A stretch of DNA of 22,626 bases from Macrostomum lignano. Taxonomy: Eukaryota. The translations under genes were made by a program, and so were the position numbers. Under the pieces are notes generated by a model. It did no database searches. It was not told where the DNA came from and saw nothing but the letters and a program-made list of their open reading frames with translations. The stretch covers positions 1 through 22,626 of the forward strand of contig NIVC01003407.1 of NCBI GenBank assembly GCA_002269645.1, read 5' to 3'. This document shows, piece after piece, positions 118-22,626 of the stretch (the stretch's first letter is position 1; the number at the start of each line of letters is the position of its first letter).

Positions 118-148
<31 letters not shown>

Positions 149-186
149 ATTTGTTAGTTAGTTTAGTCGTTAGTTAGCGTAGTTAG
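1..186. repeat. (TTAG)n tetranucleotide microsatellite, runs off left edge
   Basis: Directly visible TTAG tandem units with occasional TTAATTTG interruptions. Confidence 0.97.
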
Positions 187-508
187 TCAGTCGTCAGTCA
201 GTAAGTTAGTCAGTCAGTCAGTCAGTCAGTCAGTCAGTCAGTCAGTCAGTCAGTCAGTCAGTCAGTCAGTCAGTCAGTCACAGTCAGTCAGTCAGTCAGT
301 CAGTCAGTCAGTCAGTCAGTCAGTCAGTCAGTCAGTCAGTCAGTCAGTCAGTCAGTCAGTCAGTCAGTCAGTCAGTCAGTCAGTCAGTCAGTCAGTCCAG
401 TCAGTCAAGCTAGTCAGCCAGTCAGTCAGTCAGTCAGTCTGTCAGCAGTCAGTCAGTCAGTCAGTCAGTCAGTCAGTCAGTCAGTCAGTCAGTCAGTCAG
501 AGTCAGTC
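187..508. repeat. (TCAG)n tetranucleotide microsatellite
   Basis: Near-perfect GTCA/TCAG tandem units contiguous with the TTAG tract. Confidence 0.97.
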
Positions 509-1055
509 CCAAATACATACATTGTAAGAATATGCGTGTAAACGTGTTTACAACCCATAAGCCAGATTAGACCGTTTTAACAGAGTCATATGACTTTAAA
601 TTCAACCATATAGCTAGCAATATGCAATATGTATTCATATGTAAAAAGTGTTTAATAATTTTAGCTTGCATGGAAAAGGCTCATCTGGCATCTCCGCAGT
701 CACATGCCTCACGAGTCGCTCAAGCTACTGCTCTTATCTTGTATTGGATATTTGCCCTGGCACTGTACTGAAGCACTGTACATACAGCCTATGAGCAGTT
801 ACTCAGAATCTTATCTTTGAGTAATGTTTACGCAGACTAACTAATTCACAGAGCACAAATCGCAATTTTCTGTGGGAATATAAAACTCAAAATTGGGATT
901 CATGTTTATTCTTAAGCGAGTAGTCAACTCAACCATTATTTGTAGTGACTAACTAAACACCTGCAAATTTTTTGGTAAGTATTACTTTTTTAAAAACTGC
1001 ACAAATAGCTTGAAATGTGTCGAATTGGGAAAAACCTGAAGATCTTAACTTAACA

Positions 1056-3020: not shown

Positions 3021-3494
3021 CATGCACTCAGCAACATGTTAAAGTTTCCATACCTAAGCCAGCGGTCAACTTCTGTCAGATCTCACCCCCAAGTGACGCA
3101 ACTCAAACCACACCCACAATTCTCGTCTCAACGTTAACTGTGCAGGAGAGTTATGACCAAGAGTTTGATTAGGGTTCTCACTTGTGGACCACTGGTTTTT
3201 GGGGTTGGGGTCAGTGACGATTTGTTAGTGCAATTCCGAATTTTTTAGTCTAAATCAATCCTACATACGAAAAGTATAAGCTTGAGAGTCGATGCAAAAG
3301 TTGGTCTATGGTCGAAACTCCGAGCGCAGCGAATGCGCCGGACTGTCCCACCAAGACCCAGCTGGTTTAATCTCGTGCGCGGCCGCGAACTACGATACTG
3401 AATGCAGTTTCAGCAAGAAAGCCATAGACTATAGAACTGCCATCGAACTGCATGCCTCTTGGCTTCATCGGCCATAGACAACTTGCTCATCCTT

Positions 3495-3503
3495 TATATA
3501 TAT
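3495..3503 (+). promoter_or_regulatory. Candidate TATA element upstream of pacifastin-like gene
   Basis: TATATATAT about 100 bp upstream of ATG 3600; position only, no transcript evidence. Confidence 0.35.
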
Positions 3504-3599
3504 GGTAGATAAATTCAATCACTCTCATGGCTCTCGCTAAATCTACAGTTCATCAACTCCGCAAACCTCGCATTCGCAGTCAACTAAGCCGCAACGAGC

Positions 3600-3925
3600 A
3601 TGTCCAAGTTCCGACCAATTGTTGCTGTTGCATCTCTGCTTTTGTTGCTGCTCCTAGTAGTAGCACCGGACACCGCACTCGCAAGATGCACCCGGAGCCC
3701 TGTTTTGAACCGGCTGACTTCTGTAGAGAGACCGGCCACGGCGGCTTCACGTTCTCACCCGATGGCTGCAACACCTGCCGGTGCACTCAGGACGGCCAGC
3801 TGGAGAGCTGCACGATGGTGATGTGCCCGCAGGATATGAGCGACAAGGCCTGGACTGATCATTGCGCCGAGCTGCGTCGCAAGGCTGAGGCGCCGATCCC
3901 AGTGCAGGAAGACGAAGCTCTGTAG
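3600..3925 (+). CDS. Small secreted pacifastin-like (CNxCxC...CTxxxC) serine-protease-inhibitor precursor, ~108 aa, broken by a 1-nt frameshift near 3684-3700
   Basis: Frame from ATG 3600 gives a signal peptide MSKFRPIVAVASLLLLLLLVVAPDTALA. The overlapping frame (ORF 3527-3925) gives C-RETGHGGFTFSPDG-CNTCRC-TQDG-QLES-CTMVMC, matching the pacifastin consensus C-x9-12-CNxCxC-x2-3-G-x3-6-CTx3C except for a 14-residue first gap. Adding one base joins the two frames. Confidence 0.65.
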
Positions 3926-4449
3926 GACTGGAAATTACACCTGCTCACGCGTGGGCTTCATGTTTATTCAGATAGTTCAGCATTGCAGCTGCTTCAATTG
4001 TTGAACCGAAATACAATGCATCAGTGTTTTATGATGTGTGGTCAAATTTATTTGAAGTTAATATCACAGAAAACATCGTAACGATTGTAGTTAATTTATT
4101 TTCTAAGCCAATCGAACCTCCGCTCGCACCGATTAGCTACTGAAGATTCCTTGTTGTCTATGGTAAATGCGTTGCAAGCTGCAGCACTGATTCATAGAAA
4201 ACCCTCTCCTGTTCAAGCTTTTAGAAGTTGAGTTTATCATATTTTCTCAACCATTCGGTAAGCCTGCAAAATGGTTACAATAGGATTAAAAGAAGCTATT
4301 TAGGTAAATGATTATGCACATCAAATTAATAAAACTTTTGACGACTTCTATTGGCGTGTCAATATTTACACATCCCAAAAAACATGCAATGCAATGGCTG
4401 GCTTCGTGGAGCAAAATTATTCTCCAAATTTTAACAGACGAAGAATTTG

Positions 4450-5376
4450 TGGACGACCGGACTGCTGTCACTGCCGACAACATCCAGCGCATCCAGGCTC
4501 TGGTTGACATTGACCAGCGTGAAAGTCAGGGAACTTGCGGCAGACACTGGACTCTCTGACCCGCAAGTCATTGAGATCCTGCACCAGCATCTTCATCTGT
4601 CCAAGGTTTCTGCCAGATGGATCCCACGAATCTTGACAAGGGACCAAAAGACCGCACGGGTGCAGTACTCAAAGCTTGTCCTGGACTCCTACGATCCGGA
4701 CCCTGCCAACTTTCTGTCCTGCTGCGTGACCGGGGATGAAACGTGGATCCATCACCACGATCCCGAGTCCAAGCAGGAGTCCAAGCAGTGGCTGCCAGTT
4801 GGTTCACCTGCACCACTGAAGGCACGGACTGCATGCAGTGCGGCAAGATTATGCTCACCGTCTTCTGGGATGCCAAGGGCCCGCTGCTGCTGGACTTTCT
4901 ACCGCACAAGCAGACAGTCACAGGCGCCTACTACGCTGACCTGATCGCCCGTCTGCGCGAAGCAATCAAGGAAAATAGGCGAGGGATGCTGAGCCGAGGT
5001 GTTGTGCTGCTGCACGACAATGCGCCGGCCCACACTAGCAGGATTGCCAAGGCTGCTGTCAGTGTCGCAGGGTTTCGAGAACTGCCGCACCCAGCCTATT
5101 CACCAGACCTGGCCCGAGCGACTTCCACCTGTTTCCACATCTCAAGCGGCGCTCCGTGGACAGCGATTTGACACTGATGATGCGCTGAAGATGTGCAACT
5201 GCTTGGTTTGAGGGCTGTCGTGCAATTCTTCCAGAGTGGCATTGAGGCGCTGCGATTCAAGATGCCATAAGTGCATGCTTGGTTGGGGGAGACTATGTTG
5301 AGAAAAGCTGATCTCACTTTGCCCATATCTCCTCTCTTTCATATTAAGGCTCAGAACTTTAATAGTGCCCCTCGTA
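4450..5376 (+). mobile_element. Mariner (Tc1/mariner, D,D34D) transposon relic, 5'-truncated
   Basis: Motifs across shifting frames: RWIPRIL (WVPHEL equivalent), VTGDETW, IMLTVFWD, LLHDNAPAH, YSPDLA(P)SDF, terminal GDYVEK (stop 5309-5311). 34 residues separate the HDN and SDF aspartates. The right end reads TA-CGAGGGGCACTATTAAAG on the minus strand with TA at 5375-5376. No matching left TIR seen. Confidence 0.93.
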
Positions 5377-6093
5377 CATTGTGGAACCGGGCTCCGTCCA
5401 TCACGATGTAACACTGCCCAGCGATGTACTGACTTGGTCACTTTCTCTGACATGGAAAAAACTGAGAGTGGAAGGGCATGGACACCGCCACAGATATCCC
5501 TCTGTGGACAGCGCTGCATGGACAGGCTTAAATGAGAGCCGGCAGATTGCCTGCCGGCTTGACACACTGGTGGACCGAGTGGTGACAACTAGCAGGGAGG
5601 CTCAAAATGCTGCTGCTGCCGCTGATGAACACCTTCAATTTGTCTGGGCGCCAGGATTCGGCCGAAATTAAGCGGGAATTTCTCCTAACACCCCAGTTAG
5701 GATTAGAAGATGCCGCTCTGGATAACGGACTGGGCGTGGATTGCACTGAACAAATTATCTGCGGAATCTCTTGAACACTTCACGACAATTCACGAAGTAA
5801 AGAGAAAAGCTGCAATACTAGCTCTGCCCAATGGTTCTAACTTGATCGCAGCTGCTGACTCGATCCATTGTAGAGCATTTGAGAGTAAATACTGTACAGT
5901 ACAAGCTATGTCACCTGAACGCAGCTTTTTTGGTCCTGACGCGCTTGGAAAGGTTAAAATTAAAATGGACTTACATGTACATGAAGCCTATGGACTTTTA
6001 TGAACTTTCTTATAGCATTATGGACTAGCAAAAACAGAAATAGGCTAGCACTTGATTTAAAATCTATTTAGAAAAAAATATTAAATACGAGCT

Positions 6094-6237
6094 AAAACAG
6101 AGGAAGACGTACAGGCAATAAAATTCTTATAGCTCTGGACATAGTTTCGGAATGAGCCCTTAATTGTATTTTTTTCAAAAAAATGGTTAAATAAAACGGA
6201 GGAAGACGTACATACAGGTAATAAAACTCTAAGCTCT
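6094..6237 (+). repeat. Imperfect ~45-bp direct repeat, two copies ~100 bp apart
   Basis: AAAACAGAGGAAGACGTACAGGCAATAAAATTCTTATAGCTCT (6094) vs AAAACGGAGGAAGACGTACATACAGGTAATAAAACTCTAAGCTCT (6193). Confidence 0.8.
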
Positions 6238-6643
6238 ATAGTTTAGCGGCACAATACAGCGTCAGAATTCCGCACGTCAGCGCAACGTCAGCATACCGCA
6301 GAGTGGATCATTTTCACGAGTAACCAAAGAAAATTCTTCTTTAAAAATTTCATGAATCGACTAGATTATTTTACTCGTAACATTCTAATCAATGCATTTA
6401 AACAGTCTATGATTTTTAAATTAAAAAATTTAAGTTTTGGTCAAAACGAGTAAGTTCAACCGTATTTTCAAGAATTCAGAATTTTATTACAGGCAATAGC
6501 TGCATGTGTTGCAATTTTACCGGGCAGCTACAACATCCGGCACGACCAACTGTGCATGATTAATTACCGCTCCAGTTTGAAGACGCTGGCATTAAACTTT
6601 AATTGCAAAAATCACCGAAATACTTCCTAGCTGTCGAATTCAA

Positions 6644-6650
6644 TATAAAA
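6644..6650 (+). promoter_or_regulatory. TATA box of secreted peptide gene copy 1
   Basis: TATAAAA in context GAATTCAATATAAAAGCAAGCG, conserved exactly in copy 2, 78 bp upstream of the ATG. Confidence 0.6.
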
Positions 6651-6721
6651 GCAAGCGTGTATCGTGATTATAGGCTAAGTAATTTCAAAATCAGTTAAAG
6701 CACTGAAATACCGATTGAGCA

Positions 6722-7092
6722 ATGAACTTCAGTTTGAAATTTCGGACTCGAATCGTCGTGCTGCTACTTGTGGCAGCCACAGGCGTCAGTGGCAGCTACA
6801 ATTGCTTCTCACATTACGGCATAGAGGTCGTTCCGGGCTACGAAGAAGCGCTGATCCGTGGCTTTATGAACGATTTAGGAATGAGCCCAGATGAGCCTCT
6901 CCTTGCGATGGACTACAAGGAACTCGTAACCCAAATGATATGATGTACTGCTTGGGCGATATGGTCAAACACGACTGGGGCGACCCCTGTGACAAGCGCG
7001 AGGTGATGCAGTGTTCGCTCTGCCCAATATTTTCACAGGTGTATGCAGCATGCAACAATGCAGACGTTTCGAGATGCTATTATATTTGGTAA
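6722..7092 (+). CDS. Secreted 7-Cys peptide precursor of unknown family, copy 1 (123 aa after restoring one G at ~6937)
   Basis: Signal-peptide-like MNFSLKFRTRIVVLLLVAATGVSG. After a 1-nt shift the frame continues MMYCLGDMVKHDWGDPCDKREVMQCSLCPIFSQVYAACNNADVSRCYYIW* (TAA 7090-7092). Copy 2 is in frame across this point, confirming the reading. Confidence 0.8.
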
Positions 7093-8850
7093 TCACTGCT
7101 TATATATTGTCTGATGTACGTACCACACTGAAACCCAATCGCTATGCATAATTCACTCAGAATCTGCATGGGATTTTGATTAAAATACACGTCTACTGAA
7201 AGAACTGTTTCAGTCAAATTTCAAGCATCTATTATTGCATAAAATGGTGTTATCAATGTTTCTTTAACCTCGTGACATTCAAACAGAGTAAAAATTGACT
7301 TTGCCTGTTCATCAGTTGCACCGACACAGTCTTTAAGGTTTGAGGTGATGACTGTCAGGACTGTACAAAGAAGTGACATTTTGGAGCTTAAGAAACGTCG
7401 ACACGCACTGACCAATTTTCGGAACAAGAAATCACAACTACTCTATACAGTAGAATTTTATGAGAAAAAAACTGTTGCGGGAATATAGTAATGGATAATA
7501 AAGTCAGAATAATATAGTTGCGTAAGAGTGAGTTGATATATATATAATGGTTCTCTTCCAGCCAGAACATACACATGCAATGTAATAATCCTACAGAGTA
7601 GAGTTTTTTGTTGTCTTACACAAAAGGTCATACAGTGTCGTTGTGATATTACTCGTATTTTGCTAACGGTAGTATCGCGGTAAGCCATAGTACTTGTAAT
7701 GTTAAATCGCGGGACGCACTCGGTTGATTTTCGGTTGCATCCAGAAAGCCTAGGCAGATCTCTTCAGGTGTGATGTCAGTCGAGGAAGTCGCTTAATTGT
7801 CCTGCGAGGTAGAAGATATATGACAGACGGAGTTGGCGGTCGTACGGAATCGGCCAGCAGGTGTTGTACTTGTGTGGCTGCCTCATGGAGTGAATCGTTG
7901 TGGATGATGAAGTACCATGATGGCATTGTTTGGGCAGATATGACGCTGTTGTGATGTAACGTCAGCAGCAGTTTGGTGCTGCTGCATACGTTTCTCAACT
8001 GTTCTGCCAATTGAGCGGTTAAAGAGTTTAATCGGGTGGTGATCAGTCACTCGAAAACTCCCACTTCCAGACCTTAAGCCTGGGAACAAAATTCAGTGAT
8101 CGCGGTGGTGTCAGGCAAGCTCCAGCAAGCATCAGCGGCGCCAGTGACAACGCTCAGGACATCTCCAGTACGACCGAGAGTCGCGGTACAAGGACTTCTG
8201 CTGGCGAGGCATGTGCAGCCCGACGAAGGAGGTTCAGCAGCCACGGTGGCAGACAGCGATGACCAGGGCCTAGCGACATCACCGGTTTTCGGCGTCAGCA
8301 AGCGACTTCGGGTGCCAGAGTGCCAATCGTCGAGTCGGCTCGCGAATCGTCGGGTGTCCGTCGTGTTGGAGTCGAGTAGGAGTCCGGCGCAGCCCATTCG
8401 GCCTGATTTACTTCATTTTAGTGTATTTTTCATCATGCTTTTTGGTTCATGTTTTTTTTCAATTGACAATTTGACATTATTAAACTGTTGCTTTACTTTC
8501 ATGTCGCAAGAAAGTTTTCAACGTTAAAGTAACATCGGTAGACAGTGGTGCAATTTTTTCGTTTCGTTGCGGTTGTCACCCCGAAGTTCTTGCTTTTTTT
8601 ATTTTTCGCGTTTATTTCTCTAACATTTATCGTCCAAAATGCGTTTCCTCAACACTCGTACATTTTTCATATGCGTCAAACTCGTGTTTTCATTATTCGA
8701 ATGTTGCTAACGCAAAGACTGCTCGTCATAAATCTCGTTGTCGTGCTATAAATTATTCGCGTTTATCCTCATTGCGCCGTCGTATCTGTCCAACTCATCG
8801 AATCCTGTCTTTGTCTCCATTCAGTCTTTGTTCTTGTGACTCGCCTTTTT

Positions 8851-9311
8851 AAGGAGGGGAGGATGTTGTGCAATCGTGCCCTTTCTCGCCCTCCTGCCCC
8901 GCCCCAACCCTCCAGTCTGCCCCACCCCTCCAATCAATAATCAATGCGTACGCCGATCACGCCACCCCGCCCCACCTCCCCTGCTGTACCGTACATTTGT
9001 TCTTAAGTTATATTCATGTACGCGTAGGACCAATGAAAAATATATATTCGCTGTCTGGAGGGCAGACTCCTCCCTTGCGCGCGTTGGTCCGCCTCCGTTG
9101 GCTATTGAATAAAACGACTCGTCGATCTACCATAAAAAGTGCACGGCGAACTGCATCGGCTACGGTGTGTAAGTTCGTGTTCGCGAGTTACTGCCCTTTT
9201 TCTGCTTCTCCCTAGGGCGCGGGACGGGAGCTCTGACTGGGGACCTGGGGGTCGCAGCTTCCTGACAGGTTAAAGCTGTAGGCGTTGCTCCGGAGGACGG
9301 GGCTCACAACA
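8851..9311 (+). mobile_element. Orphan LTR A (8864-9311, 448 bp) with upstream polypurine tract
   Basis: PPT AAGGAGGGGAGGA 8851-8863; perfect 7-bp terminal inverted repeat TGTTGTG...CACAACA; internal CCAAT 9030, TATATAT 9041, AATAAA 9108 in U3-R-U5 order; no TSD, no PBS. Confidence 0.75.
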
Positions 9312-9593
9312 CTCTCAATAAACAAATAACGAAGACTCGAACAAAGGCTTACCGAACGGTATTTCCCTCAGAGATGTAGCCTTGCTTAGCTGCTCCAGCA
9401 AGCTCAAGATCTTTGGAGGCTGCTCCGAGTCTGATATTTCATCTCGGATTTTTCGATTGTATTTATACACAATCTTTTCGGCCTTGAGTCGACCTTCAGC
9501 TCAATCAATACCTATTTTCTGCTGAGTTCCTTTTTCTGCTGAAAAAGGAATTTTCACGTTCAGCGCTTGGTTGGCAAAATCCAGCCCACGAAG

Positions 9594-9735
9594 TCTCTCT
9601 CTCTCTCTCTCTCTCTCTAATTTCCTCTTTCTTTTTCAGCTCCTCTCTCCTCTTTTCTCCTCTCCTCTCCTTCTCTTCTCCCCATTTTTTTATCCTACCG
9701 CTTCTTTTCTCTCCTCTCTTTTCTCCTATCTCTCT
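9594..9735. repeat. (TC)n microsatellite and CT-rich low-complexity tract
   Basis: About 12 TC units followed by a degenerate pyrimidine tract. Confidence 0.9.
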
Positions 9736-9926
9736 CATCGTCTCTGGCCTGCAGTCATGCACTGGGTTCTCTATCTCGCATTGAAGAAAAAATGTTTTCC
9801 GACCCCTGATGTACATGTAAACAGTAACTCACTCCTGTTAGTTCACGAGTTGTCCGACGAGTACTTTAACCAATGTCGAATCACGTCGGGCTCACCAGTT
9901 GATGAGAAAGTAGAGAGAGAGGAGTG

Positions 9927-11057
9927 TGTAGTGAGTCGCTAGTTTAGTTAGGCGCCGCACTAGTCAGCTGCTTCCCTCGCCCTCGCCCCAGGCTTCTGTC
10001 TGCCGCTGGGCAGTTGCCTGTCCCTTCCCGCCTGTCCTCTGGCCTGTCCCTTGCCCGTTTGCCTGTCTGTCTGCTTGTCCTCATTTGCCCCCGTTTGCCT
10101 CGTGTTCTCGTTTTGCAGTGCCCAGACAGCTTGGTCTGGCCTGCCTCTGTTTCGTTCTCTGTTTGGCATCTCCAATTTGGAGTGCCATTCCGTTTTCCGG
10201 TCCCACGGTCACGAGTGCCTTCATTTGTGGGCCTTTTCCCCTTGTCATGTGACTTCCTTCTTTAGTCCAAAGTGCAATGATTTCATCATTGTACGCTGGG
10301 CTCGTGTTTATGGGGAGATCACGTGCGCCCGGACCCCCTTGCCTCCTCTGAGGCAGGGCCCGCTTGTTTGTTGCTAAAAATAGCAACAGAGTCACCCATG
10401 ACTCTCAGCGGGGGTCTTTCGTGCTATGGTGCAATCGATCCTCCCTATAAATGCAGCCCCTCTCATGGCTTGGCTCAGACAAGCCCTTGCTCCGGACTCC
10501 TTTCGCCTTTCCGCGTTTCCAGCATTCAGCACCTGCCAACCCGCTTTCTCTGCTGTTTCCGAGAGTGATACCGAGTTTGCCTCTGAGTTTGAACTCCCAA
10601 GACTCCCGACTTTGCGCGTGTCTGCCTCTGATTGCTCCTGCTATCAATTAGCAGGCCAGCTCGGATCGCCCGAAGCTAGCACTTTCGCTCTCACCCCGCA
10701 CTAGCCCGGCAGGGACTGCTGACGGTGGGCACCTCTGCGCGAGAACTGCTAAATCTGCACGAAGTGCGAGTCTCTTTCTCTCGTCTTAGTTATTTGCTTC
10801 TACGAGCTCAGCACCTCACCGAAGGCTGCGACTCTGCGAAGCTGGTGGCAGCACTACCTACGCTACGAGAACTAGTTTCTAAGAAAGCGGCACCTAGAGG
10901 TCACCGCCCTGCGCCAGGAGACCTACCAGGCCATCTCCAGTCGACATCGCAGAAGCCTGTACTTCACTGGTGGCAGCGCTCCTATTGAAGGCCTCTAGAC
11001 AACAACAGGCAAGACACATATACACTTCAAGTGTTTAGTGTCTAAACGCCCACTACA
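9927..11057 (+). mobile_element. Orphan LTR B (~1.13 kb)
   Basis: Terminal inverted repeat TGTAGTG(AG)...(CC)CACTACA; purine tract GAGAAAGTAGAGAGAGAGGAG at 9904-9924; TATAAAT 10446 with Inr-like TCAGAC ~31 bp downstream; GCCTGTC repeats at 10016-10080. No TSD and no internal coding region. Confidence 0.6.
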
Positions 11058-11562
11058 TCCAGACCGCAATTCTGGGAACAAAATAAAAATTTTAGCTAAT
11101 GCCACTTGTGAGTATTTATAACTTTGGACTTATGAAATAAAAAAACAATATGAAAATGAAACCTTGACATATCAACTACGTATCAATAAAATACAGCAGA
11201 GTAAACATGCTAAATTAAATGAATGGTAATCTTCACAAACCCAGATCGAATGTAATAATTGATTTTGTGATGATGTACCATCAGTGTTCACTCTGCAACA
11301 GCTTTCAATCCTTAACTCTGTATGCGACAATCCGAAGATTGGGCGATGCTATTTAAACCATGCAGTAATTATTTTCCTGTCGTAAAATATTGCTGACAAG
11401 GTGAAATATGGTCTACAGACATAAATTCGCTAAGAGGAGTGTATTGATTTCAATACATGGAGCCTTATTAATTTTGGCACCGGAAGGGAAGCCTAAATAA
11501 GAGCCAGGATCAGCACGCTTGATGCGCAACAAGGCGCAATTCGTCCAAGGCATGAGTCAGAT

Positions 11563-11607
11563 CAGGGGTCAGCAACTTCCGGCCCGCAAAGCCTCTCTAT
11601 CCGGCCC
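11563..11607 (+). mobile_element. Isolated hAT (Charlie/MER58-like) terminus
   Basis: CAGGGGTCAGCAACTTCCGGCCCGC...ATCCGGCCC resembles, from memory, Charlie-type ends (CAGGGGTCGGCAAACTACGGCCCGCGGGCCAAATCCGGCCC). No partner end found. Confidence 0.6.
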
Positions 11608-12023
11608 CCTCAGGTGCTTTTTAAACTTTACAATAGCAATCCGGCCTGCTTGTCTCTTTTCAGCTCTGCTTTTCTTTCTCCTCTCTTCTCTCCTCTTTTG
11701 TTTCCTCTCGGACGGATGCGGCACGACAATCAGCTTCTCGTGCTCATTGAACTGGTCTTAAACGTGCTCTACACGTTTCTATGTAGAAAATATATAAATA
11801 AATAAGTTTTATGAAATTGGGCAAACAGAGAGGCCTGAATATGAAAATAGCGTGCACTCAGCAAGGAACCTTGACATAGTGTATCAAGCGCGCGTTTGAG
11901 CAAAGCACTCGAAAAAGAGGAATGTTGCCAGTTTCAGGTAAATAACCCGAAATTGAGCCCTGGATCCCAAATACTGTACAATCCAACTCTGTATTTGTGA
12001 GCAAAGCCAGAGCTCTATAAGTG

Positions 12024-12030
12024 TATAAAA
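12024..12030 (+). promoter_or_regulatory. Candidate TATA box of cGLR gene
   Basis: TATAAAA 81 bp upstream of ATG 12105. Confidence 0.5.
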
Positions 12031-12104
12031 GTTTGACAGCAAAAGGCAACAAAAATTGTTCCAAAGAAAAACTTCGCAAGTCCCTATACGTGAGGTATTT
12101 AAAT

Positions 12105-13865
12105 ATGGCGCACGACCTCGCAGCTCACAGCCGATCGCTGTCCTCAGCCATGGCGACTGCCGGGTTTCGCTCAACAAACGCAGCGGTGCAGAGCGGCCTC
12201 GCAATGGCAGCTGAGGAGCTGGGCCGACTGCTGGCTAAAAGCTGCCACATCTTTGGCAGCTACGCTGACGGCTGGGGCTCCAACCTGTGCTGCATCAATG
12301 GAGACGTCGCTCCAGACTCCGACATCGACGTGACGTACATCATGACAGACGCGAGCCAGCAAATCCACATTCACCCGCAAGTCGCTGACGGACAGCGGGC
12401 CGAATTTCGACACAACGACTGCCAGCTGACTGAGCCTGCGGAGTACGAGGACGGGCACGTCAAGGCGCGCGTTCGCAGTAAGGAAATTCTCGCTATAATA
12501 TCATACTAATGCATTAGATATGAAATTTAGATATGTACAGAAACGAAATATATCATCTACATCTGTCCTGAAAATGCAGTTTTAGCGCCGAATATCGCAT
12601 TGGAAGTGTCGCAGATGTTGCCTGCAATAGACCTGATTTTGGCGCATTCCTGCTGCGGCTACCCTCACATCGAGCTGCTGCGGCCCGGATACAGGACTTG
12701 CATGTCCGATGACATCATGAGGGCGCTCAGAGAAGAGGTGCTGGGCGAGTCGCCAAGGTGCCACGCCGTCAGCAGCGCGCCGCCCGGTCTGGAGGGCAGC
12801 CGACTTCGAGTGAGCACAACCCTGCTGGAAAGGTCCGTCATGCAGCATCTCACCACCGTGCAGGGTCAGTTCTTCATCCTCGTCAAGTTCCTCATCAAGA
12901 GGGTGATCGGCAGCAGAGTGAGCGGTCTGAAGACGTACGTTGGCAAAAACTTGCTGTTCTACATGCTCGACGAGACACCGGCGAAGGACTGGAAGTCGGA
13001 CAACCTGCTGGCGCTGGTGCAGCACTCGTTGGACATTCTCGTGGCAATGATGGAGAGCTCAGACTCCGAGGACGCCTGCATGAGACATTTTTTCTTGCGT
13101 GACGCCAGAGTGTTCTTCAAGCGAGAGCACGACTCAAAATCGAGGATTGTAGCAGCCGTCCGTCAGTCAGCAGACAACCTGCTCAGCGACCTGAAACCGT
13201 TCAAAGAGTCTCTGCCTAAATTTGAGGTCAACGTGATTCTCCTTTCGTTTATCTCTTACTACCTTCTAGCAGTAGAGTTACTGGAATGCAGTGATTTCAG
13301 CTTGACAAAATACGCTTCCACAATGCAGACGGCAACTGAGCTTTGGTTAAGCATCAGGAGTGAAGCTCCGGTCGGGTCTCGGTCTGGCAGATTGACTCAA
13401 CTTTTGTCGGACGTCGAGCGCCAGATTCCAGACAGCGCTCAGGTCGGCAAAGCCTATCTCAGAGCCGCTGCTCTCTTCAAAATGGGTCAGCTTGTCACAC
13501 CAGAGCTGGAGGAGGCGGCAGGTGCATCTCTGGGCTATATTCGGTGTCCGGAGGGCGACGACAACTCCCTGACGGTGGCTTCGGCCAAGTCACTAGCTGT
13601 GGACAAGCTTGTGCAGACTCGCTGCCTGGGTGTCACAGCGGCAAACGGCCAAATAGTGGACTGCCCGAAGCTGGTTAATGAATACGGGCCGGTTGTGTCT
13701 TTGTTTGAGAAGCACCTGTGCGGCTTCAAAGTGACGAGGCAGCAAATGCTTCTGGCCTTGGCTTCCGGCTCCCTTTGCGCAAGACTCTGGATGAGTAATG
13801 TGAGTGCTCAAGAGATCGGGGGTCGCTTGTTTATTATTGGAAATGAGCTCTATTCACTCTTTTGA
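12105..13865 (+). CDS. cGAS-like receptor (cGLR) / Mab-21 nucleotidyltransferase, two exons (12105-12477, 12580-13865), ~552 aa
   Basis: NTase signature HIFGSYADG (G 12255), SDIDV (Asp 12321, 12327) and third Asp in AIDLILAHSCCGYP (12630). Mab-21 C-lobe motifs RVSTTLLERSVM, FILVKFLIK, LKTYVGKNLLFYML, DWKSDNL, MRHFFL. Phase-compatible GT-AG intron. No stops or frameshifts. Confidence 0.88.
12478..12579 (+). other. Spliceosomal intron of cGLR gene (102 nt; alternative acceptor at 12585)
   Basis: Donor GCA|GTAAGG; AT-rich interior containing the stop of ORF 12021-12509; acceptors TGCAG (12579) and TTTAG (12585), both phase 1, restoring the frame of ORF 12600-13865. Confidence 0.8.
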
Positions 13866-14903
13866 GCACCCAATTCCTAGTTAGTAGCAAAAATGGAATA
13901 CGAGCGTAGAAACGTTAGGGGAGAAAAGCTTTTAACTAGCGCCGCAGCTTCAAACTATATGCTTGAATAGAAAACTCCTGAATACTAGCGATTGCGCAAT
14001 AGGTGTCTAAATACAATTTGCACTGGTCCAAATCGAACACAAAGCACCATGCTCCGTTCTCCGCTTCAAGGCAACCGAGTACAACTCAAGGAACACTATA
14101 GTGGGCAGGCATCTGCGTCACTTGGATATTTTTAGGCAGATCAGCGTTCAAAGACAAAGCGGTCGGCAGCAAGACGCTCAAGACGGAAGAGGGGACAATC
14201 GAGGAGACCCAGACGAGTCACGAGGCGATTCGAATGACAAGAGTTCCCAACAATGAAACCATATTAGACAGCTACTCTCGTGAATTAATTAAAAGTTCAA
14301 AGCAGCTACAAGTGCTGAAAAGTATCTCGACTATCTAAAGTGAATTTCTGACTCTGCAAAATTCAGATGTTAAAGCCCTAACCGCGCTCACCCTAGTTAA
14401 CGACAGCAAGCTTTAATATTCTATACTTTTTCTAATTGTAGAAATTTTGATGGGATATTGGATATCTGTTTAACCCAGTCCGACGATTTTCACAATTTTT
14501 TATCCGAGCTGTTTGTCATGAAAAGTTGATGTGGAAGCGTAGCTCTTTACTTATTTCGACTGCTGATTAGCACTTCTTTGTCTTTGTAATGAACATGCAG
14601 CTGCCTAATCATGAAGTGAAGACGCTTCTAAAAATGGTATATAGTTAAGGAGACTGTGAATCATATTTCAAACGGTAAAAATAACCACACGACAACATGG
14701 TAATTCTGATTGGGCAGATATGAGTCTGTTTTCAAACGCTTCAAAATGAATTCTTAAATTGACAGAGGCGTAAGCGTAAGCAGGAATTCTAATTGGAGGG
14801 TGCCGCAACCTTGATTGGTGCAAATATTTGGTTTTCTTGTCTCTAGGTGGGCATCCCTTTCTCTTGGTGGGCGCCCAGCTGTCTCTTGATGTCCACGCCA
14901 GTC

Positions 14904-15130
14904 TGTTGGTAGGTGTAAAACGAGTGAGGTTTGAGATTGCGAGAAAACCGTTTTGGCGCTCAGGCCTGACAATTGATATATATTATAAGCCGAAGATTGA
15001 GGTGGGGTTTGGGTGTTGCACACGCACGGGCGCAACCGCACGTTGCAAACAACCACCCCCCATATACAAGCACGTACAAATATGACTACGAACAACATTA
15101 GAATATTTATAGGTGCATAGAATGCTCACA
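14904..15130 (-). repeat. 3' LTR of the Gypsy element (distal boundary uncertain)
   Basis: On the minus strand TGTGAGC begins immediately after the PPT; TATAATATATAT near 14976-14987. The ...CCAACA end at 14904 is the best guess; other CA ends exist down to ~14800. Confidence 0.55.
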
Positions 15131-15143
15131 CCACTTCCCCACC
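15131..15143 (-). other. Polypurine tract of Gypsy element
   Basis: GGTGGGGAAGTGG directly abutting the TG of the LTR, ~25 nt after the integrase ORF stop. Confidence 0.7.
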
Positions 15144-15253
15144 AGGGTTTAAAAGACACAACACAATGTCTATGGCAAAAGTTCACAGAAAATCAAGCAT
15201 TCACATTGGGCGATAAAAATCAGGAGGTCTTCGCTCTCTGGCCGACCGTCTCG

Positions 15254-15428
15254 GCAGCTGAGCCTCTTGCTGATTGGTCTCGGTCGCTGCAGCTGAGCCT
15301 CTTGCTGATTGGTCTCGGTCGCTGCAGCTGAGCCTCTTGCTGATTGGTCTCGGTCGCTGCAGCTGAGCCTCTTGCTGATTGGTCTCGGTCGCTGCAGCTG
15401 AGCCTCTTGCTGATTGGTCTCGGTCGCT
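15254..15428 (-). repeat. Five perfect 35-bp tandem repeats in the integrase C-terminal tail
   Basis: Plus-strand unit GCAGCTGAGCCTCTTGCTGATTGGTCTCGGTCGCT at 15254, 15289, 15324, 15359, 15394. Confidence 0.97.
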
Positions 15429-18400
15429 GTCTCATCCGGTCCGCCGTTACCGTCGAACAGCTGCACCCAGGCATCAGGCGCCTGGAGCTGAGGGTCAACC
15501 AGTCCGTCAGCAGCCTCATCTGCGGTAGCCTGCAGGTCGTCGCCGGGCCGTAAGGAGTTGCGCCGTTCCACAAATGGTTTGAGCCGGTCGTGGTGCACCA
15601 CCTGCCTGCGTCGCATCCGCACGCCGGGACCCGAGGCCGGCCGCACTCGGTAGTTGACCTCGCCGAGCCTCTTCAAGATGATGTACGGCCCGGTCCAGCG
15701 GTTACTGAGGCTTTTTGATCTGCCAGGTTTCACCACCTTGCAGCTCAGCATCACCAAGTCGCCCTCTTTGTACGGCCGGAACCGAGTCTCCATGTTGTAC
15801 CGCTCGTTGCGCTCGGTCTGTGACGCCTGCAGTTGCTGATGGACACGCGCCCGGCTGTCCAGCAGGCGCCTCTGAGTTGCCTCTGCAAAGTCCAGCGCAT
15901 CAGTGAAGCCATTCAATGCTTTGGGCAGCTTCGAGTCGATTGGCAGCCTTGGTGGCCATCCGTGCAGCGTCTGGTACGGCGACAGGCCCGTGGTCGAGTG
16001 CACCGAGCTGTTGAAGGCCCACGTGACGAAGGCAAGTTGGAGGTCCCAGTCGTCCTGATCCTCTGCCACAACCGTCGCTAGCATGTCACCAAAGGTTCGG
16101 TTTCCGCGCTCGACCAGGCCGTTGCCGCTGGGATGGAAAGGCAAAGTGCGGCTTTTCTGCATGCCGAGCCGCTGGCACAGGGACTGGAACAGATGGCTTT
16201 CGAATTGACACCCTTGGTCGCTGTGGATTGCGTCTGGGACGCCGTGCCGAAGCGCTACCTGCCTGACCATAGCGTCGGCCACCCGCTCAGCCTCGATGCT
16301 CGGTAGAGCGCAGGTCTCCATCCACTTTGAGAAGCAGTCAAAGATGCTCAGCACGTAACTGTTGCCTCGTGGTGTCCTTAGCAGCGGACCCTTGATATCG
16401 ATCTGGACCATCTCCCATATGGCCTCGACGGCAGTGGAGTCGCTTGCAGTGGTGATCGCTGCGGCCGACTGCTGTTCTTCCGCCGAAGACAAGCGGCGCA
16501 GCTGGCGACCCAGTTCTTGACGTCGTTGTGCATGCCCGGCCACCAGCAGCGGTCGGCGAGCTTGTCCAGCGTTCGGTCTGTGCCGAGGTGACCGCTGCAG
16601 GCGGCGTCGTGCGCGTCAGCCAGGAAATGCGCACGCAGGTGGCTGGGCACCACCGGTTTGCCCTGCCGGACCAGCTCACCGTGTTGCCCGATCTCGATGT
16701 CGCCATTTGCTATGAATTCTTCGAATCGCTGCTGACAGCCTTTGGACAGGTGGACGAAGCTGTCACTGATCGCCTTGAAGACATTCTGCAGAAGGCTGTC
16801 TCGGAGCTGCTCTGCCAGGAAGTCATCGCGATTTGCTAGTTGAGTGACAGCCGTCCGACTGAGCAGGTCTGGCACCACGTTCTCCCGCCCTGGCCGATAG
16901 CAGAGCGCGAAATTGAACTGCTGGATGGTGTCGAGCCAACGTGCCAGCCGACCCTCTGGCTCCTTGGTCTGCAGCAGGCCCTTGAGCGGCTGGTGATCGG
17001 TAACACAGTGAAGTCTTTCACGTTGCACAGGTAGGCTCTGAAGTGCTTGAGACTCCAAACCAAGGCGAGCAGTTCCCTGTCAGTGGCCGAGTAATTTCGT
17101 TCCGCCTTGTTGAGGGTCCTGAAGGCAAACGCCACTGGAAGCTCCGCGTCTCCGTAACGCTGGCAGAGAACCGCACCCACTGCGATGGCGCTGGCGTCGC
17201 AGCTCAGGACAAATGGTCGGCTGAAGTCCGGCAGGCGAAGCACAGGTGCTCGCCCAAGTTGGTCCTTGAGCGTCTGGAAGGCCGTCTCGCACTCGTCTGT
17301 CCAGGTGAAGCCCGTCTTCTGTGTTGCAGCATGCAGTGGTGCTGCTGTCTTGCTGAAGTCCCTGATGAATCTGCGATAGAAGCACAACATACCGATGAAT
17401 CGTCGCACCTCCTCGGCAGAACTTTGTTACTGAATCTTGGCCAGGGCCTCCACTTTGTCCGGATCCGGCCGAATTCCTTCCCGGCTGACGATGTGGCCCA
17501 GGTACTTCACGCTCCTGTGAGCGAACACCGACTTGTCCTTGTTGAGCTTCAGTCCCGCAGCTCGCAGCCTGTCAAAAACTTTGCGCAGGCTGGCCAGATG
17601 CTCTTCGAAGCTCCGACTGAACACGATCAAGTCATCCACGTAGACTAGCACCTCCTCCCAGGTCAGGCCGGACATAACGAGCTCCATTAGCCTCTGGAAG
17701 GTCGCAGGAGAGTTGCAAATACCGAAGCCCATCTTCTTGAACTGCATAAGGCCTCGCGTGGAATAGAAAGCAGTCTTGTAGCGGTCTGCCTCGTCGACCA
17801 CGACCTGGTTGAGCCCCTGCTTGCAGTCGATGGTGGTAAACCAAGAGCAGCCCGCCAGAGCATCCATCGATTGTTGCAGGTGCGGCAGGGGGTAGGCGTC
17901 CTTGATGGTCACAGCGTTCAACTGACGCCAGTCGGTGCATAGGCGGATGTCGCCGCTCTTTTTCCGGACGACGATCAGATTGCTGGCCCAGGGCGAGTTG
18001 GACGGCTCAATGATGTCGTGCTCCAGCATCTGGCCGATTTTCTGGTCGACCTGGTCACGAACCGGCAGCGGAATCGGTCGCTGGCGCTGCTTGTAGGGCT
18101 CGCTGTGGAGCCGAGGTCGTACTCGTGAGTGCTGAATAGGTCACCGTTCGCCTTGAGCAGTGCCAGTAGTCTCTGCCTTTCAGCCGCATCCAAGTCAGGG
18201 TTGACATCCCAGCAGTCCGACTGCTTGACTGTGCCAGCGCTGTTGTTGATCAGGTCGGCAGCTTCAAAAGAGCCGACGGCCTTGTTGGCGTAGAGCAGCA
18301 CCTCCTCGGAGCCTAAATTGCACACCCGGACTGGAATCTTCTGATCAGCTGAAACGGTCAAAACTCTCGAGACAAGCAAACCAGTCGCTTGGGTAAAGTT

Positions 18401-18927
18401 GGCGTCGGGCTCGAAGATGCCTTGCTCGTCTTCCGACTTGACGCGGAGCCACACCAGCTTTTCGCTGCGTGCTGGAACACTTGTGTTGCTTTCCACTCGA
18501 GCAACGAGGGTGCCGGTCACCATTCGGACGCTTGAGCTGCTGTTGAAGAACGGGACTTTCTCTCCGTTGAGGCATACGGTCCTACCAACGATGTCGATCT
18601 GAAGCTCTCGGGTGGCTTGGGTGATGAAGTCCATGCCGAGGATGAGATCCAGACTGATGTTCTCCACCACGTTGAGCTCGTGGACGACCTTGACTGACTG
18701 GCCGACTTGAATTGTGGCTCGGGAAATCCCGATGCAACTCAGGCGGCCACCATCGACCGAAGTCGGGCAGCAGCTTTCACCGGGCTCGATCTGAAGGCCG
18801 CAGACTTGCGCGAGGCTGCGGCTGATCAAGGATGTCTGTGCGCCAGTGTCGAGCAGGAAACTGACCTCCTTGCCTTGCAGAAGCGCACGCACGAAGATGG
18901 AGAGTGCAGATTGGGCACTTGATTGAC

Positions 18928-18970
18928 GGGTTGGAGCTGGCCCTTCGCTGCCAACCCTCAGAAGTTTCCC
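18928..18970 (-). promoter_or_regulatory. Programmed -1 ribosomal frameshift signal at gag/pol junction
   Basis: Slippery heptamer G GGA AAC (18970-18964); gag stop TGA (18960-18958); 6-nt spacer; then stem GGGTTGG/CCAACCC (18957-18928). pol is in the -1 frame. Confidence 0.8.
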
Positions 18971-19370
18971 GACGGCCGAGCCTTTGACGGACAGACAGCC
19001 GCGCCGTGGCCCCAGCCGGAGCAGTTGAAGCAGCGACCTTGGCCCTGAGATCCGCCAGCAGGGCACGGCGGGCGATGTGGCCTTCCTTACCGCACCGAAG
19101 CAGCCTGATGACCGCTGCTGCTGATCTCTCTGTCTGCCGCCACCGCGTCCTCTCGCGCTGCCGCCCCTCGTCACCGCAGCCGTCAGGGTCTCCAGCTGCT
19201 GCTCCAGCCGTGCCAGTCGATCGTCAACCATCGCCACTGCGGGCGAGTTGCCTGGTTTGCATTTTCTCGCGATTTGCTCCAGCCTCGTGGCCTGCTCGAC
19301 CAGCTCCTCCAGCGTGCAGGAGTCCAGGTCCCTGTCCTTGAGCAGGGTGTCGCAGTCATCAGCTGAAGTC
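18958..19370 (-). pseudogene. gag: Gypsy gag C-terminal fragment with two zinc knuckles
   Basis: TLEELVEQATRLEQ capsid-end motif; knuckle 1 CF-CGKEGHIAR-C (two 1-nt losses at ~19095 and ~19066); knuckle 2 CFNCSGWGHGAAVC intact; ends GNF*. Confidence 0.85.
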
Positions 19371-19734
19371 GATAATTTTCACGAGTAACCAAAGGAAACT
19401 CTTAATTAACAAATTCATGAATTGCTGATGTTTCCAAAACAGAGGTTGTTTTAACGTTCTAGTCAATGCATTTAAACATTTTATGTTTTTAAAAACATTT
19501 TCTGTCAAAACGAGTAATTTTTTAGTTCTTTAATTTTTTAGTTTTTAGTTTTTTAATTCCTTTTAAAGAATTCAGTGTTTTATTACATGCAGTAGCTGTA
19601 TCCCCTGTGTGTGTTAGAATTTTACGGGTCAGCTACAATAACCGGCACAATCAACTTTGCATGATTTCCGCTCCAGTTTGAAGACATTAAATTTATATTG
19701 GAAAAATCACCGAATTGCTTCCTGTCGAATTCAA

Positions 19735-19741
19735 TATAAAA
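19735..19741 (+). promoter_or_regulatory. TATA box of secreted peptide gene copy 2
   Basis: TATAAAA in the same context as copy 1. Confidence 0.6.
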
Positions 19742-19813
19742 GCAAGCGTGTATCGTGATTATAGGCTAAACAATTTAAAAATCAGTGAAAGCACTGAAAA
19801 AAACGATTGAGCA

Positions 19814-20184
19814 ATGAACTTTAGTTTGAAATTTCGAACTCGAGTCGTCGTGCTGCTGCTTGTGGCAGCCGCAGGCGTCAGTCGCGGCTACGACTGCAAC
19901 CCAGGTTACGCCATAGAGGTCGTTCCGGGCTACGAAGAAGCGCTGATCCGGGGCTTAATGAACGATTTTGGAATGAGCCAGATGAGCCTCTCATTCCCGT
20001 AGACTACAAGGAACTCGTAACCCAAATGGGTATGACGTTCTGCATGGGCCAAACGGTCAGCCACGACTGGGGCGACCCCTGTGACAAGCGGGTGGTGCAT
20101 CAGTGCTCGTTCTGCCCAATTTTTTCACCGGTGTTTTCACCATGCGACAATTCTGACGCTTCGAGATGCTATTTTGCTAAATAA
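19814..20184 (+). CDS. Secreted 7-Cys peptide precursor of unknown family, copy 2 (123 aa after restoring one C at ~19978)
   Basis: MNFSLKFRTRVVVLLLVAAAGVSRG signal. After a 1-nt shift (CC where copy 1 has CCC) the frame continues PDEPLIPVDYKELVTQMGMTFCMGQTVSHDWGDPCDKRVVHQCSFCPIFSPVFSPCDNSDASRCYFAK* (TAA 20182-20184). Confidence 0.8.
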
Positions 20185-20699
20185 TAACTATACTTATGCA
20201 TCATCATGCGGTGCCTGCTGCACGAAACCACTGACAACCAATTGGCTATGCGGATGCACTCAGAATCTGGGCTTTTGATTTAAATACACGTATTCTACTG
20301 AAAGAACTGTTGCAGTCAAATTTTAAGCCTAACTTACGAGCTCGTAATTAACAGTAGGAATACCAAGCCATTTTCCGCCCGTCGAACTACCAAAGAGGGG
20401 GGAAGTTCCCCCCCCCCCCTGACAATTTTTTTTGCACCGGAACGGAGCAACGCAGGCACAAGAAATTCAAGAACACGGGCCAACTTTTTTTGCGCACCTG
20501 CTCAAACAAGAATCAAGTCGCCAGCCCTTCAGACCGTCGAGATATTGGACGATTCTGCCAGAATGTCGGATTTTTCCCATAAGTGCTAGTGTATGATCAG
20601 TACACCCCTGTGCGACAAGCAGCACTGCGCCTCAACACAGCCTTGCCAAGTCTCCAAATTTCAATAGCTCGTCGATGTGTCTGTGTCTGCATCAGCAGC

Positions 20700-21095
20700 T
20701 GTGACTTCGTTGGTCCTTCAGCCTTCACCCATGTGGAGCTTCTGGACCTTCAACAGGTGGCACCAGCTGACTATGAACACCCTGATACGAATTTCTCGAG
20801 TTTCGCTGATCAAGCCTCGACAGTGGGCAAACCTCAACTGCTAGGTATCCTCAGCTAGTCTCTTGAGCATTCCGTCATCACCCGGACACCGTCGGCACCT
20901 TTAACAGATTACACCAGGTGATTATGGACATCCTGTTGCAAATATGTCAGGTTTTTCTTTTTATCAAGCTTCAATAATGGGCAAAACCTCAACTACCGGA
21001 CATTCTCAGCTAGTCTATCGAGCCTTCAGTCATCACCCCGACGCCGTCGGGACCTTCAATAGGTGGCACCAGATGAGTAATGACACCTGAGCGTG
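20700..21095. repeat. Degenerate ~153-bp tandem repeat, ~2.6 copies
   Basis: Marker GACCTTCAACAGGTGGCACCAG and variants at 20745, 20896, 21051; GGGCAAA(A)CCTCAACT at 20825 and 20979. Confidence 0.8.
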
Positions 21096-21496
21096 ATTTG
21101 TCGTCATGCTCGTAACATTTCTGAAGCTCTTAAAATTTTTTTAAGCACGTACATTGCTTTAGCTAAGCTTGAACTCATGTTGCTGTACATTTATATTATT
21201 AATACACATATTTTATACATAGAAGCTACATACATATTTTATTCTACAAGCTGTTTAGTTTATTCAACTATAATATTGAACCCAATTTTTAAGCAGAAAG
21301 GGTTATGCTTTTAAAAAATAAAAAAACCGATTGAATTTACTGGCACGCAAATGAAATTTAAGATCAAGTAAAGATAATTACTGGTATTATAATAAAAAAG
21401 AAACGAAAATTAGCGCAAAAGCATGATAGCTACTACCGTACATTCTCAAGAAATCCAAGAATGATGACAAAGTTTTTCATTATCTTTAAATATCCT

Positions 21497-22626
21497 TCAA
21501 TTTTCTGATGACATGCACAACAAATTCGTGGCCGGAAATCTGATCGTGCTCCTTCTGGCTGGATTTTTACTGTTGGTTGGGTCGCACAAGTAGACATCGT
21601 TTCGATGCCTCTTGCACACGAAACTAGCGCAGTTGGCACAATTTTTGTTTCGCGTTTCAGCGAGTACTTCTCCGCACTTGTGCTCCTTTCCGCCTTGCAC
21701 AGTCGGCATCGCCCTCGCTCTCCTGCTGGCCGATCGGCGGTAGCGCATTCAGATAGCTGATAATTTGGTTGAATTTTCAGCACCGTGTTGAAAAGACTAC
21801 GTAGATGAATTGACATGCCGGTTTGGGTCATTCGCACGGCGTTCAATCTGCGGTGGAAGCAACCCGGAAGCAGCTTGAAGGAGAAATTCTTTGCGAGTTA
21901 GGCCCGTGTGACCTGAAAGACGGTAAACCGTATGTCCGTTGATCCACACCACATTGAGCATGTGTCCAGTGAAAATTGTCTTTTCAAGACAGCGCGATAT
22001 GCGATGGCAGTTCATAGTGGTAACCATTCTGTTGATCGTGTCGGTGCCGGCCTTCGTTGCGTTGTAGTGCTGGATCAGCTCTGGTTTGTTTTTTGGAGGC
22101 ACACGTCGGCTGTCATGGTGATTAGTGGATAACAGAATTACAGTCCTCCGCTTGCTTGAGCACGCACGACTGTAAGAGGCCCGTCATAAAGGAACTCCGG
22201 CTGACTTGGTCTCTTGTTGCCCTTGAACTGAGGTGGCAGGCGATCAGCGGTAATGTTTACCCAAAAGCCTTCAAAGTTGTCGGATAGACGAAGCAGCACT
22301 TGCTCGCCACTCTAGTATTTGCCGACGCCACCGCTCTCCGCTTTCATCAGCAGGTTGTTGTATGCGGTGTACAATTCTGACTTGTACACATAATGCAGTG
22401 TGTCACTGCTTTCTTCGATCGGATTTCGAGCAGTCGTTGCCATGAAAAACTTCAGGCCGTTTCCTGCTGGCTTGTCCTTCATGAAGACAGCAAAGCTGCA
22501 GTCATTGCTATAGTATCGAATGAGTTGTTCATCGATACAAATGTAGGCTCCAGGCAGGACGGGCATTGCGAGGCGATCTTGAAAAGTGCTATACAGAGCT
22601 CGAATGCCGTAAATCGATCTCTGGCA
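21497..22626 (-). pseudogene. piggyBac transposase (DDE_Tnp_1_7-like core plus Cys-rich C-terminal domain), inactivated
   Basis: ICIDEQL...KDKPAGNGLKF (Asp1), NITAD (Asp2), KPELIQHYNATKAGTD (Asp3), C-terminal CRLC...CANC-x4-CKRH. In-frame TAG at 22312-22314, an apparent deletion after NITAD, and several frameshifts. Confidence 0.92.

Follow-up and report, generated by a model that had tools for sequence, protein, structure and literature searches.

Tandem paralogues of a putative secreted cysteine-rich protein family in the flatworm Macrostomum lignano

Two copies of a compact gene

The window that we analyzed (22,626 nucleotides) is the whole of contig NIVC01003407.1 from the Mlig_3_7 assembly (GCA_002269645.1) of the free-living flatworm Macrostomum lignano. 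It carries two copies, A and B, of a compact gene for a small cysteine-rich protein. Copy A has its ATG at 6722 and its stop at 7092, and copy B has its ATG at 19814 and its stop at 20184; both are on the forward strand. In a three-frame translation, both copies begin with MNFSLKFRTR and each then has a single change of frame. Copy A is in frame 0 through codon 72 and continues in frame +2, with 1 base missing between 6937 and 6938 (AAATG^ATATG), and copy B shifts after codon 55, between 19978 and 19979 (GAGC^CAGATG). If 1 base is put back into each copy, then both have 123 codons and they share a stop. The initial annotation of this DNA, which was made from the sequence alone, had proposed these coordinates and had argued that each copy repairs the other to 123 amino acids. 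Our translations confirm this, as do intact versions of the genes on other contigs.

Each copy sits within a duplicated unit of about 0.93 kb (6302-7230 and 19367-20330); the two units have the same orientation and a spacing of 13.09 kb. The alignment of A with B spans from about 420 nt upstream of the coding sequence to about 140 nt downstream of it. The 5' flank, promoter, and 5' untranslated region (UTR) of copy A (6302-6721, forward strand) are homologous to those of copy B (19367-19813, forward strand). Within these regions, the promoter block TCGAATTCAATATAAAAGCAAGCGTGTATCGTGATTATAGGCTAA is identical in the two copies, and the box TATAAAAG is found at 6644-6651, about 70 nt before the ATG of copy A, and at 19735-19742 upstream of copy B. 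The 110 nt just upstream of copy A are 92% identical to copy B and 98% identical to Mlig014020, an annotated relative that is described below. The coding sequence of copy A (6722-7092), with one G restored, comprises a putative signal peptide (about 6722-6793) and a mature part of about 99 amino acids with seven cysteines; in copy B (19814-20184, with one base restored), the putative signal peptide lies at about 19814-19885. The 3' UTR of copy A (7093-7230, forward strand) includes conserved blocks, such as TTTTGATTAAAATACACG, that are common to B and to Mlig014020; the 3' UTR of copy B lies at 20185-20330 (forward strand). On this contig, the sole annotation for copy B is a truncated product of 62 amino acids, which corresponds to the frame-0 reading.

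The frameshifts and redundant contigs

The M. lignano assembly was built from PacBio data with Canu, and it contains 180 Mb of duplicated blocks due to the DV1 karyotype, which has extra large chromosomes (PMC5730564). We compared the window to contigs that carry relatives of these genes: NIVC01000226.1 (L003), NIVC01000227.1 (L005), L001, L002, and L004. From 13354 onward, the window corresponds to the terminal sequence of L003. Across 9,283 aligned bases, these two contigs differ by 1 substitution and 9 indel events, of which 8 are single-base, mostly in homopolymers. The frameshift in copy B is one of these 9 indels: copy B matches L003 6466-6837 (Mlig015797g2, PAA87542.1) exactly except for the one base. 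At this site, three near-identical contigs have three different readings (CCC in L001, CGC in L003, and CC in the window). Nine indels against a single substitution is a pattern typical of residual consensus error in long reads, not of mutation, and the frameshift in copy B is therefore almost certainly an assembly artefact.

The counterpart of copy A was located via the pacifastin-like gene upstream of it (3600-3925; see below). L005 is collinear with positions 1 to 10653 of the window, and at 13744-14115 it contains an intact but unannotated A-type gene. This gene is 97.4% identical to copy A and has TGGAT where the window has TGAT. L005 and the window differ by 73 substitutions and 20 indels in 4.4 kb. 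Copy A, copy B, and the pacifastin-like gene are each 1 base short in a run of 2-3 identical bases, and an intact copy of each is found on another contig. Judging from these comparisons, the frameshift in copy A is probably a consensus error as well.

Positions 9832 to 22445 of the window also match L001, at 99.0-99.4% identity; relative to window 21270-21273, L001 has a 7.7-kb insertion (11457-19193). A single region is thus represented redundantly by the window, L001, L003, and L005, which is what the duplicated karyotype of DV1 would lead one to expect. In practical terms, the public annotation holds truncated versions of three small genes from this contig, with consensus errors as the probable cause, and it has no gene model for paralogue A despite the intact copy.

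A family known from M. lignano only

The repaired B protein, used as a query, matched two clusters of proteins, both from M. lignano: BOX15_Mlig015797g1/g2 (PAA67108.1 and PAA87542.1) and BOX15_Mlig014020g1/g2 (PAA86955.1 and PAA47738.1). All four are deposited in GenBank as hypothetical proteins, and in this sense the gene is not unrecognised, as the initial annotation had called it. Both repaired proteins are strongly similar to these annotated members, B with 99% identity (E = 3e-80) and A with 86% identity (E = 4e-67), over 98-100% of their length. Copy B is 99-100% identical to Mlig015797, while copy A is 74% identical to Mlig015797 and 86% identical to Mlig014020. The assembly therefore contains three types of paralogue: A, which has no GenBank gene model; B, which is Mlig015797; and A', which is Mlig014020. 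The A type is the third paralogue type and lacks an annotated protein, and its intact form exists only as the unannotated DNA on L005. In a DNA alignment of six loci and a table of seven protein copies, the promoter, the signal peptide, a length of 122-123 codons, and six cysteines are common to A, B, Mlig015797, and Mlig014020. Mlig014020 differs from A and B in that it lacks Cys90.

Outside of M. lignano, we found no relative among 5.8 billion clustered proteins, and phmmer, run exhaustively against 1.84 billion representative proteins, returned only the family itself. No Pfam family matched either repaired protein, the family proteins P0001 and P0002, or the mature part, even at E values of up to 10, and a profile search of the Protein Data Bank (PDB) gave chance matches only (no E value below 0.3). 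In this respect the initial annotation, which had recognised no family for the pair, was borne out. For the truncated A product (73 amino acids), a look-up of the exact sequence found no record. The A/B pair belongs to an already deposited, uncharacterised, lineage-restricted family.

Features of the encoded proteins

By inspection, the N-terminus has a basic n-region (MNFSLKFRTR), then a 12-residue hydrophobic core (VVVLLLVAAAGV; mean Kyte-Doolittle hydropathy of 3.1), and then small residues. These features support the view, already taken in the initial annotation, that this is a cysteine-rich protein of the secreted type with a putative signal peptide. A and B agree fully in the blocks EVVPGYEEALIRG, DYKELVTQM, and HDWGDPCDKR, and they share all seven cysteines of the mature part. 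The claim that the seven cysteines and HDWGDPCDKR are invariant thus holds for the pair, but not for the family: six cysteines are invariant in 7 of 7 sequences, while in Mlig014020 an in-frame deletion of 3 nt has replaced Pro-Cys with Ala, which removes Cys90. (This deletion is present on both L002 and L004, at about 10259-10270.) Because Mlig014020 retains the other six cysteines, Cys90 is dispensable and presumably unpaired. It had been suggested that the odd number of cysteines hints at covalent dimerisation. There is indeed an odd cysteine, but its absence from Mlig014020 does not support dimerisation itself.

The mature protein is acidic, with an isoelectric point (pI) of 4.28-4.36 and a net charge of -8 to -9, and it has no N-glycosylation sequons. 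The C-terminal 30-mer has a pI of 4.4-6.7. We considered a classical cationic antimicrobial peptide (defensin-like), and the acidity of the mature protein (pI 4.3, charge of -8 to -9) speaks against it.

Exchange between copies at the 5' end

The initial annotation had reported that the signal peptide and TATA region are conserved, and between A and B both the signal peptide and the TATAAAAG boxes are. Part of this conservation looks like gene conversion, however. Between A and Mlig014020, divergence rises along the gene, from 1.6% in the 5' flank and 2.8% in the signal peptide to 6-7% in the mature part and 8-19% in the 3' flank. Furthermore, synonymous variants at nucleotides 9 and 24 of the signal peptide (codons 3 and 8; window positions 6730 and 6745 in A, 19822 and 19837 in B) are swapped between paralogues: the states are C and G in copy A of the window and in the B type on L001, and T and A in copy B of the window and in the A type on L005. 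Because these variants are common across paralogues, we infer that tandem copies have exchanged sequence in the 5' end. Part of the conservation of the signal peptide and of the TATA region is thus likely to reflect homogenisation rather than selection.

Coding constraint and selection

The family is clearly under coding constraint. In an alignment of the copy A region with L001, there are 24 gap events in 790 aligned bases, and just 1 of these lies inside the 372-nt coding sequence (binomial P = 5e-6). The length, the start, and the stop are retained in five intact copies. Across the three paralogue types, 36 of the 99 mature residues are variable. The variable residues are clumped into segments (permutation p ~ 0.012), and there are invariant runs of 13, 9, and 8 residues. 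The GenBank gene models of this assembly derive from a transcriptome based on RNA sequencing (PMC5730564), which supports transcription of the family.

The initial annotation had pointed to an excess of amino acid changes over synonymous changes between A and B, and we could reproduce its raw counts: among 121 comparable codons, 33 encode different amino acids and 7 have synonymous differences only, with 30 and 4, respectively, in the mature part. These counts ignore that there are about 3.7 times as many nonsynonymous sites as synonymous sites. The divergence of the mature coding part (K = 0.15) equals the divergence of the noncoding flanks of A and B (K = 0.13-0.16), which implies that the mature region evolves on average at the neutral rate. 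Since half of the mature region is frozen, the remainder must be fast.

Site models that were fitted to the three lineages agree with a mixture of slow and fast sites. With a single ratio of nonsynonymous to synonymous rates (dN/dS, or omega) for all sites (model M0), omega was 1.2-1.65, which is not different from 1. Model M2a was preferred to model M1a (likelihood-ratio statistic of 6.7-11.0, p = 0.004-0.036), with 38-60% of codons at an omega of 3.1-4.6 and the others near 0. This preference held with either the repaired copy A or the intact copy from L005, with either the whole gene or the mature part, and with either F3x4 or F1x4 codon frequencies. In simulations under the fitted M1a model, 0 of 69 replicates reached the observed statistic of 10.06 (the maximum was 4.5). 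If 4% tandem double mutations were included in the null simulations, still none of 31 replicates reached the observed value (maximum of 9.5); with an unrealistic 18% of tandem double mutations, 3 of 32 did. The 13 codons with multiple hits that we observed are in line with the single-hit null, which gave a mean of 10 and a range of 5-16. These results are suggestive of family-wide diversifying selection on about half of the sites.

We also tabulated differences between haplotigs as if they were polymorphisms (7 nonsynonymous and 6 synonymous) and set them against the differences between paralogue types, in the style of a McDonald-Kreitman test. The p value varied with the pair, from 0.008 to 0.30. 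We do not rely on this table, as the copies are not population samples.

Interpretation and alternatives

On our preferred reading, which we consider probable, the window holds a tandem pair of paralogues from a compact, single-exon gene with a TATA promoter, the family is restricted to M. lignano in public data, and long-read consensus errors most likely account for the frameshifts in the window. The structure of the gene, its place in the family, the intact copies, the constraint on the coding sequence, and the lack of homologues are established directly by the sequence comparisons. A number of results weigh against this interpretation or against the selection that the site models suggest. 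For pairs of sequences, we estimated omega by the Nei-Gojobori method and by Goldman-Yang likelihood, with a likelihood-ratio test against omega = 1. For A versus B, omega was 0.95-1.16 for the whole gene (p = 0.68-0.94) and 1.09-1.29 for the mature part (p = 0.54-0.84). Neither is different from 1, so the excess of amino acid changes that the initial annotation had stressed in this pair shrinks to a ratio of about 1 once dN/dS is corrected (0.95-1.29, p = 0.54-0.94), which is the measure by which that annotation had proposed to judge it. The ratio was 0.63-0.78 for A versus Mlig014020 (not significant). In the mature part of Mlig014020 versus B, by contrast, it was 2.2-2.9 (p = 0.02-0.06), which is suggestive of selection in the family. 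The site test covers three lineages only and assumes a single synonymous rate across the gene, and its signal is lost if the 13 multi-hit codons are left out, a removal that is biased against fast sites. For the frameshift in copy A, the contig used for comparison (L005) is a diverged copy that is 2.4% different and has real indels, so that error is not provable without reads. At about 1 indel per kb between redundant contigs, we estimate that the probability of both copies being broken is roughly 3-9%. There is no intact A-type protein in the annotation, and one cannot tell which copy the transcript support comes from. No paper turned up when we searched full texts for the Mlig015797 and Mlig014020 identifiers, and we found no expression or tissue data for the family in the supplements of M. 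lignano papers that we searched. Finally, an AlphaFold2 model from a 4-sequence alignment had a mean predicted local distance difference test (pLDDT) score of 38 and a predicted template modelling (pTM) score of 0.27, and was unusable for comparing folds.

An alternative is that the frameshifts are true ones. The contig would then be a redundant, degenerating copy of a DV1 chromosome that carries real null alleles, with function kept by the intact copies elsewhere. All three genes for small secreted proteins on the contig are frameshifted, the assembly is rich in duplicated blocks, and the 2.4% divergence of copy A from its intact counterpart implies that it is a separate copy. Nevertheless, this is unlikely: between the B region and L003, the ratio of 1 substitution to 9 indels in 9.3 kb is what consensus error would produce, all three defects are deletions of 1 nt in runs of 2-3 identical bases, and neither A nor B has any further stop or indel, as might be found in a pair of pseudogenes. 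Slightly less likely still, in our judgement, is that the family as a whole is neutral, with young duplicates under relaxed constraint, no specific function, and an omega near 1 because of decay. The pairwise values for A and B (1.0-1.3) and the M0 values for three lineages would fit, since none differs from 1, as would the match between the divergence of the mature region (about 0.15) and that of its flanks. Decay would not account for the strong exclusion of indels from the coding sequence, the retention of length, start, and stop in five intact copies, the invariance of six cysteines and three long blocks, the clumping of variable sites, the rejection of M1a in favour of M2a, or gene models that are based on transcripts.

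A very improbable reading is that these are degenerate Frizzled-type cysteine-rich (FZ) domain proteins, which might act as small secreted binders of Wnt or lipids. UniRef names 3 of the 4 annotated family proteins "FZ domain-containing protein", and we noticed a loose likeness of C-x2-C-P-I-F-x-P-x4-C to the FLCSxYxPxC stretch of Frizzled. The fourth protein is nearly identical to these and is "Uncharacterized" in UniRef, which suggests that the automatic score was borderline. The Pfam Fz model does not match even at E values of up to 10; hhalign against the FZD8 domain (whose sequence we verified against 6ahy_A) gave a probability of 0.2% over 11 columns; and no Frizzled chain appeared in a profile search of all PDB sequences. 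Also, A and B have seven cysteines and Mlig014020 has six, versus the ten conserved cysteines (five disulfides) of FZ domains. We therefore reject the UniRef name; the likeness to the Frizzled domain (PF01392, and the FZ profile of PROSITE) comes down to that automatic name and to a size of about 100-120 residues.

Possible functions

If the tandem genes are functional, then their acidic product of about 11 kDa would be directed into secretion by the leader. The six conserved cysteines would form three disulfides, plausibly one between C28 and C77 in the N-terminal part and two among the four C-terminal cysteines, since these are the six that Mlig014020 retains. A conserved core that is probably helical (residues 35-72), along with the HDWGD..KR segment, would hold the fold, while the variable N-terminal and C-terminal segments that are bracketed by cysteines, which appear to diverge at or above the neutral rate, might contact a partner that is itself changing quickly. 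Such a protein could be an extracellular binding protein, such as a gland secretion with a role in mating, defence, or surface interactions. The conserved KR at positions 92-93 could be a convertase site that would release a 30-residue C-terminal peptide with four cysteines, and Cys90 could form an intermolecular disulfide.

Two kinds of known proteins have similar features. The putative seminal-fluid proteins of M. lignano (Mlig-pro1-76) are also short, often have a signal peptide, and often lack homologues: 38 of 65 have a signal peptide and 31 of 76 have no BLAST hit (Weber et al. 2018, PMC5977470). That set was defined by expression limited to the prostate, while we compare our family to it by sequence features alone, and we found no link by identifier between the two in the papers and supplements that we searched. 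Genes related to reproduction evolve fast in Macrostomum (PMC7336406, PMC8662610).

The other likeness is to toxin precursors of the conotoxin type (a signal, a pro-region, and a cysteine framework). Like them, our family combines tandem paralogues with a signal peptide that is conserved, a cysteine framework that is fixed, and variable residues between the cysteines, and it has a dibasic site ahead of a four-cysteine C-terminal segment. Unlike these precursors, our family has its longest conserved blocks inside the putative mature protein, its synonymous divergence is equal in the signal and mature parts, its 5' conservation looks partly like gene conversion, and there is no sequence relation. 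M. lignano is not known to have a venom apparatus.

A bolder proposal, which we regard as unlikely and offer tentatively, is that these proteins are a Macrostomum-specific secreted effector under diversifying selection. Gene conversion would have homogenised the 5' end while the cysteine-bracketed segments were driven apart, and either a dimer linked by Cys90 or a four-cysteine peptide released at the KR site might act on a mating partner, on prey, or on a microbe.

The A/B pair is ordinary for flatworm genomes and is moderately interesting for the biology of Macrostomum. It adds one lineage-restricted, fast-evolving family of secreted cysteine-rich proteins to what is known of a flatworm in which adhesion, regeneration, and sexual conflict are studied. 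Should the roughly 100 sequenced Macrostomum species confirm that expression is gland-specific and selection positive, then the family would be a compact candidate for studying how secreted effectors originate and diversify. RNA interference and transgenesis are available in M. lignano.

Neighboring genes and repeats

The pacifastin-like gene (3600-3925, forward strand) lies 2.8 kb upstream of copy A and is another compact gene for a cysteine-rich protein of the secreted type. It matches Pfam's Pacifastin_I, a protease-inhibitor domain (E = 6e-7; open reading frame at 3527-3925). One G is missing at 3681, so that the signal peptide (with its ATG at 3600) and the domain are read in different frames. 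An intact copy of 108 amino acids (Mlig016275g4, or P0006) is found on L005 at 10001-10327. Pacifastin inhibitors are generally seen as belonging to arthropods, which makes a flatworm member noteworthy. We found nothing about pacifastin or an inhibitor in the supplements of the seminal-fluid screen or in the Macrostomum papers that we searched.

Between A and B, at 12021-13865 (forward strand), two adjacent open reading frames resemble a Mab-21 or cGAS-like nucleotidyltransferase. The first part has a GS...DIDV motif with a weak match to Polbeta, and Mab-21_C follows (E = 3e-5); the two are split by a frame change or an intron near 12509-12600. The collinear loci on L001 and L003 have no gene model here. 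One could speculate that the A/B pair and its pacifastin-like and Mab-21-like neighbors make up a small cluster of secreted or defence-type genes.

The repeats and mobile elements elsewhere in the window are in keeping with such a flatworm genome. The remainder of the interval between A and B includes a fragmented retroelement of the Ty3/gypsy type (15170-19237, reverse strand), whose protease, reverse transcriptase, RNase H, and integrase domains lie scattered over several frames. Several single-base indels separate this element from its counterpart on L001. Within the open reading frame for the C-terminal part of the integrase is a perfect tandem repeat of 35 nt x 5 (15254-15429). A remnant of a mariner-type transposase (Transposase_1, E = 2e-16) occupies two overlapping frames at 4447-5171 (forward strand). 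The contig starts with an array of GTTA/GTCA tetranucleotides (1-508), and at 1055-2950 there are about 82 copies of a 23-nt satellite, ACATCCTGTCCTTAAATGATCTG, which is also present on L005.

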